Source: Lepidodermella squamata (lineage: Eukaryota; Animalia; Gastrotricha). From it: 64,000 nucleotides of DNA. Of the stretch, positions 51,113 to 62,486 are shown piece by piece. The translations under genes and the position numbers were made by a program. The stretch is taken from positions 930,001 to 994,000 of the forward strand of contig JBLDXI010000009.1 in assembly GCA_047495785.1 (NCBI GenBank). Reading direction: 5' to 3'. The notes beneath the pieces are model-generated. The model did no database searches. It was not told where the DNA came from and saw only the letters and a list, made by a program, of their open reading frames with translations. Numbering within the stretch: position 1 is the first letter of the stretch; every line of letters begins with the position of its first letter.

Positions 51113-52410
51113 ATGAAACTGAACGGCCGCGCTGTCTATTCGGTTCTGCGTGACTTGAATCGCGCTTTCTCAACTTCATCGCAGGTTAAATTACCTATTC
51201 AATGCATTTTAAAAATTTTAAATCATTTCGCTTTCAGAGGAGTACCCGAGTCGCTCTATTGGGAGCTGCTGGTGGCATCGGACAGCCTCTTGGTTTGCTT
51301 TTGAAGCAGTCACCTCTTATCACTCAGCTAGCACTCTATGATATTGGTGCGTAAAATTTTTGTATCTCTTTGTACGTCTCTACTGACCATTCTCTCATAG
51401 CTAACGCTCAAGGCGTCGCGGCTGATATCAGTCACGTGAACACAAAGGCGAAAGTAACAGGCTTTACCGGTGCTGAGAACTTGAAGGCCGCACTTGCTGG
51501 TGCTGAGCTTGTATTGATTCCAGCTGGTGTACCTCGCAAACCTGGCATGACTCGCGACGATTTGTTCAATACTAATGCCGGTATTGTGCGTGATCTTTGT
51601 GATGCTGCGGCCCAGGTTTGCCCTAAAGCTATCATCGCAATTATTACGAACCCTGTCAACTCGACGGTGCCCATTGCAAGTGAGGTATTCAAACGTCGTG
51701 GCGTTTACGATGAGCGCAAAATATTCGGCGTGACAAGCCTTGATATTGTGCGTGCAAATACGTTCATCGCTGAAGCTAAAGGTCTTGACGTCAGCAAAGT
51801 TAACGTCCCGGTTATTGGCGGTCACTCTGACACCACCATGATCCCAGTCATCTCTCAGGCTACCCCTAGCGTTTCATTCCCTCCGGTAAGTACAATCTTT
51901 TGTTTGCTGACTTTGAGCTAAAGGTTATGATCAACAGGAGGAGCGTAAGAAAATCACTTCTAAGATTCAGAATGCAGGAACTGAAGTCGTCAAGGCGAAG
52001 GCCGGCGCTGGTTCGGCTACACTGTCGATGGCATTTGCTGCCTACCGGTTTGCCGGCTCCATGTTGGAAGCATTGAATGGCGCCAGCGGAGTAGTTGAAT
52101 GTGCTTTCGTCAAATCTGATGTTACAGTTAGTTCGACAGTTTTTGAGTACTTTCGTTGTAATCTTCAACGCTTTGAATCACAGGAAGCCAAGTACTTCGC
52201 AACGCCCCTGCTCCTCGGTGTATGAATTTAACTTGAGTTTTTTTTACACCATGTCATGTCATTTTCTTCATTTAGCGTCAAGGTTTGGAAAAGAACTTGG
52301 GCATTGGAAAGTTGAACGACTACGAAAACTCCCTTTTGCCCAAGGCCATGGAGGAATTGCTGAAGAACATCAAGGCCGGTGAAGAATTCGTCCAGAAAAC
52401 TCTGAAGTAA
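51113..52410 (+). CDS. MDH2: Malate dehydrogenase, mitochondrial
   Basis: Presequence [82 protein letters not shown]; five introns. Confidence 0.97.
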
Positions 52411-52970
52411 AGGAGTTCAAAGCGTTGGGCGAGTCACTTTTTAAATCTTTTAAATCTACTATGGACCATTTGGCGTTGCGAAATGACAAACCTTATACAT
52501 ACTTCAAATTTATGCCTAACGTTATTAAATTTATCGATATATTGGAAGTTAATCCGAATTATTCATCAAACCTCATATTTTCGCAACGTCGTGTCTGCCC
52601 TCTTCCTGTGTTAGCGACACGTAAATAATAAAAGATGACGATTCGATGCCCGATAAATAGGCGAAAAATTGTTACTAAACATCGCAAATGATAGTTATGC
52701 GAGTATGTTATGTAAGCTCTGAGTATCAAAGAGCGTTTCGTGTTTTCCCGTGTTCATCGTGCGTGCTTAATTGATAAAACAGACCTGTTTTTGACAGGAT
52801 AAATCGTATCAAATACATAATTATTGTAACACAAAATCCCGAGTTTCAAAACATGGTCGTGTAACAGCTTATTATCATTTCAATTGCGTACCCTTCGTTC
52901 AACTAAGATGGAGATTTTTCAGTTGAATCCAATAAACCGGATGAGTGAATGTATTTTTTTCATATTAGAA

Positions 52971-53695
52971 ATGGTTCTTAAATGTGTTTTGAAGCTGTCG
53001 GAGGAGAAGTACGACAAACTAATAGCAACTATCGCTACGTTTGATAAAAAGCTAGCTGAAAGTGTGAAGGATGTTGCATTTGTTGGCGATAATAAGGTCA
53101 TGCATGTCCCCAGCGATTTGCTGCTTCGATTGAGGTCAAATACATGCGTCCACAATTTCATCGAACCTTCATCCCTAGATATAATCGACATCACAAAACC
53201 GGCTGAAAAGGTAGCAACACAAGAAATCAATTGAAAGTTTTAATAGCTGTATATAATCTTAGAACCCTGAGCTTGCAGCGAGGCTCGTAAAGCTGCGTCA
53301 TCAAGAGGAACAGCGATTGTACAACGAGATGGTTTCTAATATTACGAAACCGGCAGATGACCGGGTTGCGGAAGAATCCATGTCTAAAGACCGTAATTTT
53401 TCATGCTTTGTAAGATATAATTTACATATTGGTTTAATTCAGTTAAATTCATCGATCGTCAAATAATTGGAGTTGTCAACTTTGTTCTAACTGTGGCTGG
53501 CGCAGCGGCATTCGGATACAAGGCGCCCGAGTTGTTGTGGGGTTTCGAAGAGCAGTTACCGGTAGGAAAATTGTCAAGTTTTGAAATGCTTTATGAGCAA
53601 TAATTTTTATTTTGCAGCGGATATTTTTTGCGGTTTTCTGCGGTGCAATCGTATTTATTGCAGATATTTATTTCATGATTATTCGAGGGGTTTGA
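52971..53695 (+). CDS. TMEM199: V-ATPase assembly factor Vma12/TMEM199
   Basis: K|NPELAARLVKLRHQEEQRLYNEMVSNI, RQIIGVVNFVLTVAGAAAFGY, VFIADIYFMI; alternative in-frame ATG at 52908. Confidence 0.87.
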
Positions 53696-53802
53696 TTGAC
53701 GAATCCATGTCTTGCAGTAAATTTTAATAATTGCCTGTTTTTATCAGCAAATAAAATAATTAGTTGTCATTTCTGCTGATCAAATTTAGAGATTATTATG
53801 AG

Positions 53803-56800
53803 ATGAGTAATTATCGCGGCCGAGGGAGAAGAGAAAATGGTGCCAATGCGAGCACTGGCCGTTATTTTCATCATGAATTTTCCCAACCTCGAGTGAGCAA
53901 TCGAGGGGATTACCATTCTCAGCATTCGGCAGGTAGAACTAACTGGCGAAACGATCGAGATTTCGCGTCAACATCCAACAATAGCGCAACAGCTCGAACT
54001 TCATCGAGTCATTCAGTGAGAGCTGAACCCTTCTACCAGCAACCCCACTTCGTTCAACCGATCCAGCCGAATCCTCCGCCTCTTCTATCCGACTACGATC
54101 CACCTGTGCGGCCCGGACCGAATGCAACTCGGCGACCACCCGGTGCATCACCTGTGCGGAAGTTGCGAACAAACGGAGCGTCTGCTGTTGACAAATCACC
54201 GCCTGGAACATCCACGGGAGGATCGCACGATGCTGAAGTAGCGAAAAGGAAAGCTTTCGACGCCAAACGCCTTAAAACCCATTCCGAGTCCGACGCCGAT
54301 AACCAACACATATTTTTTAGCGAAGATGACGACGCTCCAGTCACTGGCACATCAGAGGTGAAGAGCGGAATGGAACTTGCGGCCGAAAAAACCAAGCTAC
54401 ACCTCGCCGATGTTGACAATGAGTTGTTGACAGTTGATGCCGAAATATCTCGCTTGCAGGCCAAACGTGAGCAATTGTTGAAGCAACGTTCCAGTCTGAA
54501 CGATATTTTGTCCTCAATGATCGGAGGTGCATCGAAGCCAGCCGAGACTGCCAGTCGGTCGCAAACACCTTCGACGAGAATGCCATCGGCCTCGCCAAAA
54601 ATAGTAGAACCCTCCGCGGTCAAGCGACCTCACAGTAACTCTTCGGCTGGAACCTCCTCACGCCCTGAACTTCAGTGTCCTGAGGTGTCCACCCATTCCC
54701 CTGCCCCAGTTTCACCGGAGCCAGAACCACCCCTTCCAGTAAAGACTACGAAGAGAAAACAAGGGGCATCAGTGTCGGAAACACCTGTTCAATCTTCCTC
54801 TCAGTCGTCGTCACTCACCCGACCGAATAGTTTGAACGCCCAAGCAGTTGCACCTGTTGCTCAGCTAGAGCCTAACCCGCGGACGATTACCGGCACACTC
54901 CACCTTGCTTTCCGTGATGTCGACAGCGGATATAGTTCCCGAAGCGTCGATGACGACTCTTTGATAGTCACCTGTTTCGTGGGTGTTGTAAATGACCCTA
55001 ATTTGCTACTCATCGGCAATAAATCCGGTCATGTGTGCAAATACAGCATCCAGACCCAACAGGTTCTGCGGAAGGAATTTATCTTTCGTAAACCTGTTAC
55101 TGCCATATGCGGGATTCAAGGAGGCTCTGCTGATTCAAGCGAAGAATTGCGAGTTTTTGTTGGTTCTTCAGATGGAGACTATCGTTGCTACAATGGGACA
55201 TTGTCGGAAGTAATATCATCGACAAGATTCGGCTGGGGCGTTTGCTGCATCAAATATCTTCATAATCACGTTTACATAGGCATTGGAGTAAGTTATTTAT
55301 ACAATTCTATAGCTTGTTTAATGTTTTCTTGTTCTCTCGTAGAACGGATTGATTAGCATAATTTGCCCCAAGCGTAAGAATTGCCCTTTCAGACAGCCAT
55401 TTGGTGTTAATTGTCATTCATTTCATAGGTGGAGTTGTTTTGGAGAGATTCTCCGCTGGATGCGCCTTTGTCTACGATCTTGAGGCACTTCAGGAATCGG
55501 CGCGTGATACCATAGTGTGTGCCCTCAAAGCTATTGATTCACTCGCGGTCAGAGATGCCAGGTTTGTTAACGCACAGTACTTCGTTATATTGTCTCGTTA
55601 AACGGTCAGTCTATGGTAATATTACTACGCTTGTTTTTTAATGCGCGATTATCACGTGAGCTTCACGCTCCCAAGCTAAAAGAACACAGTTTTTTGCCAC
55701 AGGCATGTTGTTTTCATCACATCGCGCTAAATATATTAGGCTTAGGCTTTTACGTAATGAGTAATGGAAAAGTATTACGCTACCTTTGCGGTATTTATTA
55801 GGTCTACGCTATCAAAAAATATACACGTCAGTGCTTTGAATGGTCTAGCTGTAGATATTCATCTTTTGATTTGGAAGTAGCCTAGATCAGGACAGAATTT
55901 ATAATGCTGAAGTGTGCACACTTTTATTCCTATATAATATTATGCAGCTCGGGTATTGCGTTGTATTATCGTCGGCTTTCAGTGTACAGAAAAGAATCGG
56001 CGAGATGCGTGTAGTTTTTTGCCACTCACATCGCGATTCTGTGCCTGTGTATTGCAAACTGTAGATTAGAACGAAAATTATTATTGATTTTTCGGCTTTT
56101 TCTCCCCAAAAAAGACACACTAGCTTGATCGTCATCATGATCAGAATTATATACCTCCATTGCATGACTTGTTGTTTTACCCTTTGCTCTGCACCTCCCC
56201 AGTGATGGCCTGCATTTGCGAAATATCGAACTGCCACGGCTTTCATCATTTTTTAATGAAGCCGGCTCGTCCTCGGTGCCGAGCGCGAAACAAGTGAACT
56301 CTCCATCATCCCCGCTGGCATGCACAAATTTGGCGAGTGCTGGCGGGTTTATATTCGGGTGTCAGGTAAATTTAATGGCTAATACGTACAAGCTGAGAAA
56401 TTTGCATACCTTCGAACCAGGCTAATGGACAGGTTTTCGCTGTCGCTCCTGGCAGCAAAAAAGCTACCACAGTAGCTAATCTCGATTGCCGTCCGATGGC
56501 CTTATCTGTTATAGGTTTCAACGCCTCTAACGGGATATACATAGCTGTAATAACAGCTGATTCAATTGTTCGAGTGTTCTTGGTTTCCTCTTCGATGCCA
56601 ATTGGGGCGAACTCTTCGAAGAAGAAGTCCGGCGGGAAGGCGAAACAATTCAGCTCTCGAATGTCTTCCAGCTCAGAAGACGAATCGGACCAAAGTAGAG
56701 CTCAGGTCAGCTTTCATCAAGTATTCCACTCTACGATGGCTCAAAAAGGCTGGTCACTGTATAATGCAGCAATGACATCTTCTGGCTTGGTTTGCTTTAT

Positions 56801-56942
56801 GTCACTTTACTTTTTTTAGACCAAGTTATTTTTTCAGATCTGCCTGATAAGTTACCAAACTAATGCGTCAAACTCCATAACACCACCATGGATTCTTGAA
56901 TGTTACATGTTTCCGAAAATGCTGATGGGAGAGGTTGCGTAG
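53803..56942 (+). CDS. ZNF106-like WD40 protein (RG-rich N-terminus, coiled coil, WD40; no zinc fingers seen)
   Basis: VFVGSSDGDYRCYN, VYIGIG|NGLISII, LQESARDTIV...SLAVRDAS|DGLHLRNIE resemble the ZNF106 WD40 region ([33 protein letters not shown]). Confidence 0.65.
55838..55991 (+). ncRNA. Candidate intronic box H/ACA snoRNA
   Basis: Inside a 640-nt intron: hairpin TGGTCTAG(55841)/CTAGATCA(55889), H box ACAGAA(55892-97), hairpin TGCTGAAG(55905)/TTTCAGTG(55984) with inner stem ATAATA/TATTAT, then ACA at 55986. Confidence 0.45.
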
Positions 56943-57161
56943 TTGAAAGGGCATTCATTCCACGGTATAAATACTTATATTACTACTTTTTATGGCTCGG
57001 GAAAGAATTTTGTTGCCTGTTTTTCTTCTCTAATCAAACAGCTCAAGCTATACAGCCTCACGTGCTCGAGTTTAACACATTAAAGCAGAGAAAGATTTTT
57101 AGTCAATCCTCCTGATGATTTTCCTTTCAGTTTAGCAATAGAATTTTATTAAATATTTAAA

Positions 57162-58238
57162 ATGTCGAGGTCTCATACTCTTGGAACCAAAGTTACTGTC
57201 CTTGGCGGTGCTGGAGGCATTGGCCAGTCTTTCTGTCTGTTACTGAAACAGTCGCCGTTGGTTACTAGCCTGGCAGTTTTCGATGTAGTTGGTGCTGTTG
57301 GCGTTGCCACCGATCTCAGCCATATCAACACGCGATGCAGCGTTCGTGGCTACGGCCCAGAGCAACTGAACGAGTCACTTGAAGGTGCTGACGTTGTTGT
57401 CATCACTGCCGGTCGGGCTCAGAAACCAGGCATGACCCGCGAAGACTTGTTTAACGTCAACGCCCCAATCATCCGCGACCTAATCACTGCTATCGCAAAA
57501 ACCTGCCCAAAAGCGATGATCTGCATTATTTCAAATCCGGTCAATATGTTTGTGCCCATCGCCTCTGAAGTAATGAGTCGCCATGGAGTTCTCGACTCCC
57601 GTCGCATTTTCGGTGTCACGTCACTTGATGTCATGCGTGCCAGTTTGTTCGCAGCCGAGATGAAACGGATTGAAACCGGTCACATGTTCGTGCCTGTCAT
57701 CGGTGGCCACTCGGTTAATTCAACCGTGCCAATTTTCTCGCAGAGCCGTCCTGCGGTCGAAATCACTCCCGAAGAACAAGCCTCCTTGACTGAACACACA
57801 AAGAATGCCGTCTACGAAGTCATCAACGCCAAGGCAGGGGCTGGTTCTGCGACGCTTTCCATGGTAAATTTCCGTGTGGAGCATTTGATTTTCATTAATT
57901 TTGTTTCAAATTTTTAAGGCCCATGCTGCCTACCACTTCACCATTGCCCTCCTCGAGGCCATGCATGGCGTGCCCGGCGTCGTTGAATGCGCGTATGTGC
58001 GATCGGATGTCACCGAGGCTAAATACTTCTCAACCCCGCTCCTTCTTGGGGTAAGTTCAGATTCTTCTCTCAGATTACGTGACATTTCTTATTTTTAATT
58101 GTAAAGCCGGCTGGTGTTGAGCGTAATCTCGGTATTGGACCTCTCAACGACTTCGAAAAGAAACTACTTGCAGAGTCGGTCGAAGAGCTGAAAGCCAACA
58201 TCAAGTACGGCGAAGACTGGTTTTTCAGCAAAGCCTGA
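57162..58238 (+). CDS. MDH2-derived dehydrogenase without presequence, with LDH-type substrate residue (candidate LDH / 2-hydroxyacid dehydrogenase)
   Basis: [57 protein letters not shown]; introns 57864-57918 and 58051-58106; ends WFFSKA*. Confidence 0.9.
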
Positions 58239-59535: not shown

Positions 59536-62486
59536 CTACGAGCGTTTGACATAAGCCGACGGGAAAATGCCAACCTGAAATTGCAAAGTGGTACTTGAGA
59601 TTAGAAAGCTACATAACAATAAAATCATTTACATTTCCATTCCGGTTGCGACCTCGCCACCATTCTCCAGCCGGCCTGCCAGGAACACTTGTTGAAATCA
59701 CTTCAATCGCCTCGTTACAAACCAGTTTAAGTTCGACTGAACTGGCCGGCTGGTAGTCGAATAAAGCTCTCGCTTGGAATAGTGAAGTTCGCCAATCAGG
59801 GCCTTGGTAAGCATAGAGCAAAGGAGTCGGTAGCTCATTGAAAACAGGCTGAAGCGATTTTTGCTGATAGTAAGTCACAAGATCGACGATAGTGGTGAAA
59901 AACGGCGGGTCTTGACTAAGCGAAAATCGACTGTCAATTCTGACGATTCGAATGTGGCGAATATGTTCTATTGAGTCATGCGGATGTTCAGGATTCGACT
60001 CTCGAGCGTCGAATTTCAGCGAGATGGCATATTCGCCTGGTCGCAACGAAGTCGCGGCACTTTTCCTTACAAGAAATGTACCTGATCTCAGAGCCTTCAG
60101 ATGTTGGCCAGCCACTTCTTTTGTCATTTCGCCTACATACCACGGGTAGTTACTCATATCTTGTGGACCCGTTTGCACCAAAGGTTGAGAGGTGAGCGGT
60201 CGCCTTTCTGCGACGAATGAAATCGGGAAGAATCCTTTGCCATCTCGGCTTTCACCATAACCCCAATCACCCCACCGAACCCAAAGACAAATTATATCCT
60301 TAGCCGAAAATCGAAGAGTTGGCAGTTTACGCGGATGTTCAGGGCTGAATCCGTCATAAGCCCGTATCGCCGTAACAGGTTCTGGTCGGCGGTCGGGTTG
60401 AGCTCCCACCCCAGACATGCAGTTGCCATGACAAGCAATACGGCAGTATTCGATGGCACACTCATAGCCCTGGAACAGCCCACCGGCCATGAATTTACCA
60501 CAAACGCAACATTCGTAGGGCTCGTCAAATGTTTTATAAACAAAATGATGGTCACCCTTCATAAAACCTCGCGGACGAACGTTTGATTTTGCAGTCATTA
60601 TCGCGTTGATCCAATTACGCTTTTCAACTTCGGAGCGCACTGCCATTGTATAAACGTTTTCAACGGGATCCTCTGGATTTTCCCCAGATCGCCTCCTGAT
60701 TTCAAACGCGTGTTTAAATTTATCTTTGCCTTTAAACGCGGAGGTTGGGTCCAATTCAGCAGCTTCAAGATTGGTTACGTGGCAACAATCGCGCAATTTG
60801 TATTGCTGAGGTTGCCGCGGTTGCATTTTGCAAATAATTAACATGAAGTCGAAGAGAAACACGAAGCGGACATTGGCCCTGGTATCAGCGTGCGATCTTA
60901 CAAGCATTTCACCGTCTATATGCATGCGACCGTAATCGGCCAATTTCGTATCCACTGGTAGGGTCATATCGGCTATTTCACTCTGAATAATTTGAATTCG
61001 ATCCAACATCTCACCGTCCCTCTGCGCTTCGTTTATACACCGCTGAATGTCGCTTATCTGCAAATGAACCGAGACGCAATTAAGACAAAGAAAGAAGGAA
61101 ATTTAATACTGTCACTCACCACAGCCAGGCAATCGTGCATGTTCTTTTTTTCTTCTTCATCCGGGGTATTTTTCGCAATCGCGTCGAGCAATAAGTGATA
61201 TTTGAGCACCCGTTGGATAGGAACGAAGAGGTATTCCCGCAGCGAAAACGATCGCATTTTCTGAACCTGGCTGCAAAGATCTAAAAACTGCTGCCGCACT
61301 TGCTCGTTGCCCTTCATAATTTTGTCATAGGCCATTTCTGCGATTGGCTTGTTAACGACATATTTGGTGTAAACAAGAAACTCTCGCTTCCGCCGCACCC
61401 ACATTCCAAGTAGGTTCAACTTATTTTTAGAGTTAGGTTGAAGGGCAGACTCGACTTGAACATAGAGCTCCTCAAGAAACGCTTTATGCAACAAATACAA
61501 CTGATCCAGATATTGAAACAGCTGTAACCACGGTTCGCCCGACATGAAGACTCGAGACTTCTGCATGATTTCCGTTACGACCATTTTCAAAGCTGAAATT
61601 GAAATAAATTGAAAGTTTGAATGTAAGCTAAGCGCGACAGTAAAAAATTACTTTCAACGTAAGTCTCTTCTGTGCTTATGAGCTCTTTCACGGCATATTC
61701 CCGCTTTGTCTTAGCTTGCGGTTTTAGCGTAGCTTGAGCGACAAGCCTGTCGTAAACATCTTCTTCGTCGCACTGGAAGCCCAGGTTCTGATAAACATCG
61801 TCATCCTCCGCTGCAGCGCCATCAGTAGCGTCTGCGGCGTTGTTGGAAGCATTGGACAAAAGTTGAGAGGTAGATCCGCCTTGAGCTACAGATAGCAGCC
61901 TTCTAGGCGGGGGAGCGAGCGACGCCGCTGCATCGGCTGCCATCAAAGGCATTTCATCCAACCTTCCGTATATTTGATCGTCATCATTCAGAAGACGATC
62001 AGCCGGAGGCCATGCTTTTGCACCCAGGAGAATGGACTGCTGCAGTCGGGAAAGAAGTGAAAGAGTCACCAAGACTTTATAGAAGTTTTCGAGGTTAGCC
62101 AGATCGCGTTCGGAAAACACGTCTTTGACGTTTAGTCCGAGCTTTTCAATCATGGCTTGCCGCACCAGCGTTATATTACTCAGGGCGAAATGCATCGACT
62201 TGGAAAGAGTAGTAACTTTTTGTCGAGGAATCACTCCGGGAACGATCCGATTCAAAACAGCGCATAAGATCACTCCATCTCTTAGCATGTTAGCGAATTC
62301 TACCAAACTTTGGGATCGGAACAATCTTGGAAAATTTAAATAAATTAGGTCAAATAAATATTTATGAGGGGTGGCTTACTGATGATCAGAAGGCAATATT
62401 TTCAGCTCTGAGATCCACTGAAGACACATTTTCCAGTCATCATTGGTGACATTCGACGAAATCCGTATCAACGCCGATCCCGCCAT
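59536..62486 (-). CDS. VAV: Vav guanine nucleotide exchange factor (CH-Ac-DH-PH-C1-SH3-SH2-SH3)
   Basis: FANMLRDGVILC (CH), acidic Tyr sites IYGRL/VYQNL/VYDRL, ELISTEETY...VPIQRVLKYHLLL (DH), PH, C1 HHF...CCVC...CHGNC, SH2 WYVG...GTFLVR, C-terminal SH3 ALFDY...WWRG...GIFPSAYV. Confidence 0.95.

Follow-up and report, generated by a model that had tools for sequence, protein, structure and literature searches.

The 64-kb stretch of DNA analyzed here (the window) contains a canonical mitochondrial malate dehydrogenase gene (MDH2; gene A) and, 4.75 kb past its stop codon on the same strand, a second gene of the mitochondrial MDH (mMDH) type (gene B). No further member of the lactate dehydrogenase (LDH)/MDH family is found in the window. 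Gene B is a genuine, conserved and neofunctionalized MDH2 duplicate. Its product is probably a cytosolic NADH-dependent 2-oxo-monocarboxylate reductase that arose by local MDH duplication, with the conversion of pyruvate to L-lactate as the leading candidate reaction. Gene B makes a good candidate for a lactate-type enzyme with a new origin specific to animals.

Structure, ortholog and origin of gene B

The gene model obtained from the sequence (57162-58238, plus strand) consists of three exons, with GT-AG introns of 55 and 56 nt, and codes for a 321-amino acid protein of the mMDH-type clade (Table 1). Pfam searches identified Ldh_1_N (PF00056; 146 bits, 8e-43) and Ldh_1_C (PF02866; 54 bits, 2e-14) in exon 1 and PF02866 (24.8 bits) in exon 2, both domains of the LDH/MDH superfamily exceeding the curated cut-offs. 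The closest PDB matches of the protein are the pig and human mMDHs, and it shares 58% identity with the product of gene A. The last intron of gene A (297/0) and intron 2 of gene B (278/0) are located at one alignment column and in one phase. A retrogene origin was ruled out because gene B has introns and one of them has a site and phase in common with gene A.

Table 1. Coordinates of the features of genes A and B in the window.
Feature	Position	Strand	Description
Gene A, canonical mitochondrial MDH	51113..52410	+	Six exons (51113-51184, 51238-51346, 51401-51885, 51938-52126, 52184-52219, 52276-52410); 341 aa
Unpaired acceptor-like tttcctttcag	57120..57130	+	31 nt before the gene B ATG; from sequence
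Gene B exon 1, codons 1-234	57162..57863	+	ORF, donor ATG/gtaaat; short N-terminus, Rossmann fold, substrate loop, catalytic His, helix NAVYEVI
Gene B codons Arg85-Ala86-Gln87 (LDH numbering 100-102)	57414..57422	+	Val-Pro-Arg in mMDH
Gene B NPVNMF	57534..57551	+	NPVNST in mMDH; the two polar residues past the catalytic Asn140 motif are replaced by Met/His and Phe
Gene B GGHSVNST	57702..57725	+	Catalytic His kept; Gly two residues later replaced by Val, next T and I by S and T
Gene B helix TKNAVYEVI	57798..57824	+	IQNAGTEVV in mMDH; NAVYEVI part at 57804-57824
Gene B exon 2, codons 235-278	57919..58050	+	Acceptor ttaag/GCC, donor GGG/gtaagt; frame continuous with the mMDH alignment
Gene B exon 3, codons 279-321 and TGA	58107..58238	+	Intron 2 after LLLG, phase 0

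Gene A has no named relative above 72% identity and is placed weakly with a Macrostomum flatworm in the tree (88/84). The source of the DNA is probably a spiralian, perhaps close to the flatworms. Its GGHSD motif (51800-51830) includes an Asp two residues past the catalytic His, a position at which 98.5% of the mMDH-type proteins have Gly. The LDHs likewise carry an Asp near this position.

The N-terminal regions of the two genes are different. Gene A begins with a presequence, an Arg/Ser-rich extension of 28 residues before the first strand (6 Arg/Lys, 1 acidic). The N-terminus of gene B (MSRSHTLGTKVTVLGG) has only 10 residues before that strand, and that of its ortholog, described below, has 15, each with 2 basic residues; the extensions of the A pair comprise 26-28 Arg-rich residues. 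Unlike MDH2, gene B lacks a cleavable N-terminal presequence. An in-frame TAA is found 12 nt before its ATG with no acceptor in between, and the sequence H-x-LGTK just past the ATG is conserved in the B proteins of both species. A translated comparison of the two upstream regions detected no conserved exon that could supply a presequence; the matches were the last exons of the preceding gene. A preliminary description of this DNA, which had located a second mMDH-type gene about 4.7 kb downstream of MDH2 and noted the absence of a presequence, agrees with these results, and the upstream exon that it had considered as a possible objection was not found in this comparison. Since the mitochondrial presequence was lost, gene B likely codes for a cytosolic protein. 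Neither a conserved PTS1 nor a conserved PTS2, the peroxisomal/glyoxysomal signals, was found in the two B proteins. Peroxisomal targeting was rejected: the C-terminal SKA (...FFSKA) is not conserved, the ortholog ends in ...FFSQ, which is not SKL-like, and there is no PTS2-like N-terminus.

A search of a 5.8-billion-protein database using the full exon 1 as query identified one ortholog of gene B (P0001), from another species, in the ENA metagenome contig L001. In this contig, in which both MDH-type genes were modeled, the genes follow one another as in the window: the canonical MDH comes first, then a Vma12-like gene, a gene for a long low-complexity protein, another conserved gene and finally gene B. 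The proteins of the two species share 80% identity in the B pair and 83% in the A pair, with dN values of 0.155 and 0.144, respectively, and a pS of about 0.8, which is saturated. A dN of 0.155 while the synonymous sites are saturated indicates that gene B is under purifying selection, and it is as constrained as the essential gene A. The signature codons differ between the species (Gln CAG/CAA, Arg CGG/CGA, Tyr TAC/TAT, Lys AAG/AAA), and the Gln codon, which the preliminary description had listed as a possible assembly error, is not one. There is next to no chance that gene B is an artefact of assembly or annotation, or a decaying pseudogene copy of MDH2. The spliced open reading frame is intact, the ortholog occupies the same place in the gene order of an independent metagenome contig, protein identity is high at saturated synonymous sites, and the GC3 of gene B matches each host genome. 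Both readings were refuted by the conserved gene order, the intact ortholog and the dN/pS comparison. Further B-type genes were sought with a shorter, fragment-aimed query of the protein database, which returned none, and with two degenerate-DNA scans of the JGI metagenomes (AGRAQKPGMT; NA[x]YEVINAK), which gave 0 matches; a search of the ESM Atlas yielded ordinary MDH clusters only.

Introns turned over between the two species. Intron 1 of gene B (57864-57918) is missing from the L001 ortholog (L001 10127-10978). Gene A has five introns in the window and three in L001 (4911-6088), one of which (NPV/NST) is at a site without an intron in the window.

A tree of 56 proteins, built by maximum likelihood with E. 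coli as the root, placed gene B inside the bilaterian mMDHs, with a stem of 1.44 substitutions per site compared to a median end branch of 0.2. This placement is the one expected by the preliminary description, which had proposed that the gene should nest in the MDH2 clade. The free tree search left the position of B unresolved, and the tree in which the A and B clades were placed together had a log-likelihood 12.9 units higher (p-AU 0.69). In addition, the five A and B sequences all have Tyr at B239, a residue found in 0/202 others, and control clades have 0-1 such residues in common with B. Gene B is best placed as the sister of the neighboring gene A. Taken with the tandem arrangement, the AU test and the Tyr at B239 point to a lineage-specific duplication followed by a burst of change and then by normal rates. 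Measured along the tree, the two species are 0.39 apart for their B proteins and 0.32 apart for their A proteins. A long stem followed by conservation is the pattern of neofunctionalization.

One of the proteins retrieved, P0195 (UniRef A0A161ZX22), labeled Daucus carota, is in the tree the sister of a sea-cucumber mMDH (99/90), and animal contamination of this plant entry is probable.

The substrate-binding region

Residue 102 is the canonical specificity residue of the superfamily, Arg in MDHs and Gln in LDHs (PMC4109310; bioRxiv 10.1101/2023.06.21.545977; PMC11461317). The substrate loop of gene B is AGRAQKPGMTR, and Gln87, coded for by the CAG at 57420-57422 within TAGRAQKPGMTR, occupies the column of residue 102. 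We aligned 205 mMDH-type proteins from animals, environmental eukaryotes and E. coli; this column has Arg in 205/205, and the two preceding columns have Val (100) and Pro (101), each in 204/205. Arg102, the sequence criterion for an MDH (EC 1.1.1.37), is replaced by Gln in both the window gene and the L001 ortholog. The ortholog is alone in having Gln at this column among 328 retrieved relatives, and Arg is present in 323 of the 325 relatives that bear the motif. The sole other residue different from Arg among the 328 is a His in P0229, a 247-amino acid fragment (source 'merc') that reads PAGVPHKPGMTR; this His may reflect an error in sequencing or a further variant.

The helix onto which the loop closes was also modified. 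The G, the T and the last V of NAGTEVV are invariant (100%) among the 205 mMDH-type proteins and gene B differs at each of them. Together with the Gln at the invariant Arg column, these differences greatly exceed what chance would give. In the whole helix (57798-57824), five of the nine residues are altered at 100%-invariant mMDH columns, including the first-shell positions 236, 237 and 240. Over the full length of the protein, 26 residue columns with a conservation of 90% or more, plus one gapped column, differ from the consensus in both B orthologs. In the canonical genes of these species, 1 of 72 test columns differs from it. Seven of the columns changed in B are 100% invariant in mMDH-type proteins (E. 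coli numbering): Arg81 to Gln, Thr124 to Phe, Ile206 to Thr/Val, Gln207 to Lys, Gly210 to Val/Leu, Thr211 to Tyr and Val214 to Ile. Near-invariant columns altered in B are Val79 to Arg, Pro80 to Ala, Ser123 to Met/His and Gly179 to Val (E. coli numbering).

The catalytic residues, on the other hand, were kept. Both B orthologs have GGHS, LD, MTR, VMR, NPV, GGAGGIG and FDV, and gene B retains the GxGxxG Rossmann motif, the NAD-selecting Asp, Arg109, Asn140, Asp168, Arg171 and His195. The preliminary description had given the Gln codon, the CGC codon of the corresponding MDH2 Arg (51535-51537) and the NAVYEVI helix with the right residues and coordinates, and the GGHS, LDVMRA and FDV that it had called intact are present. 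The LDH-like changes go beyond the two that it had noted, as they also include Q to K, I to T/V and V to I in the helix, G to V by the catalytic His, and ST to (M/H)F after NPVN.

To compare gene B with LDHs, it was aligned with E. coli mdh and with three bacterial genes annotated as L-LDHs, all taken from plasmid records. The bacterial L-LDHs have Gln at the Arg102 column, and their helix is (S/V/T)-R-(D/N)-(A/K)-A-Y-x-I-I, which confirmed Gln102 and an A-Y-x-I-I helix for LDHs; the preliminary description had named Gln102 and an AYE(V/I)I motif. The helix of the B orthologs is (T/V)-K-N-A-(V/L)-Y-E-V-I, and that of mMDHs is I-Q-N-A-G-T-E-V-V. The residues located within 6 Å of the substrate are 102, 109, 112, 140, 167, 168, 171, 195, 199, 236, 237, 239, 240, 245, 246 and 250 (PMC4109310). 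When these 16 first-shell positions were placed on gene B by counting from the catalytic anchors, an indirect mapping, changes were found at 102, 236, 237 and 240, plus a conservative T to S at 199, and the rest were kept. The bacterial L-LDHs have Q, A, Y and I at 102, 236, 237 and 240, and gene B has the exact same residue at 102, 237 and 240. At position 236 gene B has Val/Leu, a bulkier aliphatic residue than the Ala of LDHs. Ala236 has been tied to the strict exclusion of oxaloacetate in the Plasmodium LDH (PMC4109310). A global test for convergence on the LDH majority residues was not significant (8/18 and 5/21 of the B departures versus a 25% background, p=0.06 and 0.64); therefore, convergence is claimed only locally, for the loop and the 233-240 helix.

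Besides having Gln102, Tyr237 and Ile240, gene B resembles the canonical L-LDHs in that residue 236 is aliphatic and not Gly, the AG of the loop is preceded by Thr, and the residue at 233/234 is basic, Lys in B and Arg in LDHs. Nonetheless, gene B shares 26-29% identity with the bacterial LDHs and 56-60% with mMDHs, falls outside the LDH clade, keeps MDH-type sequence features, and is phylogenetically an MDH. It also has an Arg at position 100 that is absent from the LDHs compared. By analogy with mMDHs, the protein is probably dimeric. Clade, fold, domains, the catalytic His and Asp, Arg109, Arg171, Asn140 and the NAD-selecting Asp are those of the animal MDH2 enzymes (pig 1MLD, human 2DFD/4WLE), from which gene B differs in the missing presequence, the Gln in place of the universal Arg102, the seven altered invariant columns and a stem branch about five times the typical length.

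Predicted activity and known MDH-to-LDH transitions

In the history that we propose, a local duplication of the mitochondrial-type MDH within the animal lineage generated gene B. The product lost its presequence and probably works in the cytosol. A burst of substitutions then hit mainly the mobile substrate loop and the helix onto which it closes, and the machinery for hydride transfer was kept. Gln has taken the place of the Arg that binds the second carboxylate of oxaloacetate, and Val/Leu236, Tyr237 and Ile240 fill the pocket. Given these two modifications, the enzyme should no longer be specific for oxaloacetate, and the loss of this specificity is very likely. It should reduce, with NADH, 2-oxo monocarboxylates with an uncharged tail, pyruvate being our best guess for the substrate. 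Gln102 by itself proves nothing, because the Arg102Gln substitution alone in the E. coli MDH results in low activity on both substrates (PMC4109310).

The loss of activity of the E. coli mutant on both substrates, which is 10,000-fold, would fit a feeble enzyme or a pseudoenzyme with a non-catalytic role such as binding, regulation or heterodimerization with another MDH. The protein database covers the transcriptome from which a third A-type ortholog was recovered, and searches of it gave no transcript of gene B, a result also compatible with such a role. We consider this explanation improbable, since all hydride-transfer and NAD-binding residues are conserved across the two species, the dN is as low as that of the essential canonical gene, and the changes are concentrated in the pocket and not spread over the protein.

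The main unexplained feature of gene B is Arg85 (position 100), a new Arg located two residues before Gln87 in both orthologs. The conserved Arg85 might still bind an anionic group and keep some dicarboxylate binding; its conservation therefore keeps alive the explanations in which the substrate has an anionic tail. One of them is that gene B still codes for an MDH, a cytosolic isoform of the mitochondrial type in which Arg85 takes over the pairing with the carboxylate. Yeast has a cytosolic isoform of the mitochondrial-type MDH. The conservation of Arg85 through different codons (CGG/CGA), at a column with Val in 204/205 mMDH-type proteins, and the intact state of all the remaining catalytic residues speak for this possibility. 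It is nevertheless unlikely because no MDH without Arg102 is known (PMC4109310), the bulky residues at 236 and 237 and the changed 240 shrink the space for the C4-carboxylate, and a plain relocalization gives no reason for remodeling seven 100%-invariant columns.

Arg85 could also be the distal binder of a different 2-oxo acid with a distal anionic or polar group, as in the reduction of 2-oxoglutarate to L-2-hydroxyglutarate, or of hydroxypyruvate or glyoxylate. We know of no family with the loop of gene B. The Arg in this loop was shifted, not simply lost, and mMDH has a weak 2-oxoglutarate reductase activity (PMC11461317). However, with larger residues at 236 and 237, and with Phe and Met/His following NPVN, the pocket should be smaller or more hydrophobic, not longer, and we give this explanation a low probability. 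A monocarboxylate such as pyruvate is the substrate preferred here.

LDH and MDH are a textbook case of how enzymes change specificity. The parent of the Trichomonas LDH is a cytosolic-type MDH. LDHs originated from MDHs once in the canonical family and again in Plasmodium, Cryptosporidium, Trichomonas and Selenomonas (PMC10583557). These previous convergent LDHs, from three protist lineages and one bacterium, each found their own solution at residue 102 (PMC4109310; PMC10583557). The three eukaryotic enzymes have, at or near this position, Lys with a Trp insertion, Gly or Leu, not Gln, and the parents of the convergent eukaryotic LDHs include alpha-proteobacterial 'LDH-like' MDHs, not the mitochondrial type (PMC4109310). 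The LDHs of Trichomonas vaginalis, Plasmodium/Toxoplasma, Cryptosporidium and Selenomonas ruminantium are, like gene B, MDH duplicates with residue 102 replaced and a long stem followed by conservation (PMC4109310; PMC10583557). In contrast to gene B, none of them comes from an animal, and gene B uses Gln as the canonical LDHs do. Their activity has been measured; that of gene B is a prediction. The E. coli MDH laboratory mutant R81Q (R102Q) has the clade and the substitution of gene B. However, the mutant has a single change, whereas about 25 additional departures are conserved in gene B, and several of these lie in the first shell.

A survey of the literature found no report of an LDH derived from an animal or mitochondrial-type MDH. 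Gene B may represent a further independent origin of L-LDH from MDH, the first in animals, the first from the mitochondrial-type dimeric clade and the first that re-invented Gln102, Tyr237 and Ile240, although we put this forward tentatively and with more doubt than confidence. If true, it would be a case of mechanistic convergence, which published work on the superfamily holds to be hindered by epistasis. Its confirmation would provide a natural experiment on the well-studied mitochondrial MDH scaffold, with the unaltered parent gene at a short distance, and would test if the canonical LDH solution is reachable despite epistasis. The R102Q substitution that fails in the laboratory would come with a short, defined list of companions, and the second-shell changes that rescue it would be directly testable. 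If confirmed, gene B could also point to an uncommon way of re-oxidizing cytosolic NADH in an invertebrate lineage that has been little sampled. A role in anaerobic metabolism, which the preliminary description had raised, is pure speculation.

Flanking genes

Rfam searches produced no match in the window. A small gene located between genes A and B (52884-53234, plus strand) resembles the Vma12-domain gene of L001 (6436-7020) through ...PSS..I.D...P.K, although Pfam missed the window exon; this likeness supports the conserved gene order. It is followed by a conserved multi-exon gene (53764-56940, plus strand) that ends about 220 nt before the ATG of gene B, on the same strand. This gene has a 530-amino acid low-complexity exon without a Pfam match, and its C-terminal exons are 45% identical to those of L001. 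The unpaired acceptor-like sequence before gene B (Table 1) is a possible spliced-leader acceptor, in which case the preceding gene and gene B could be co-transcribed and resolved by trans-splicing. Past gene B, on the minus strand, a long exon (59609-61063) has PH, C1, SH3, SH2 and SH3 domains, which correspond to the C-terminal half of a Vav-type exchange factor.
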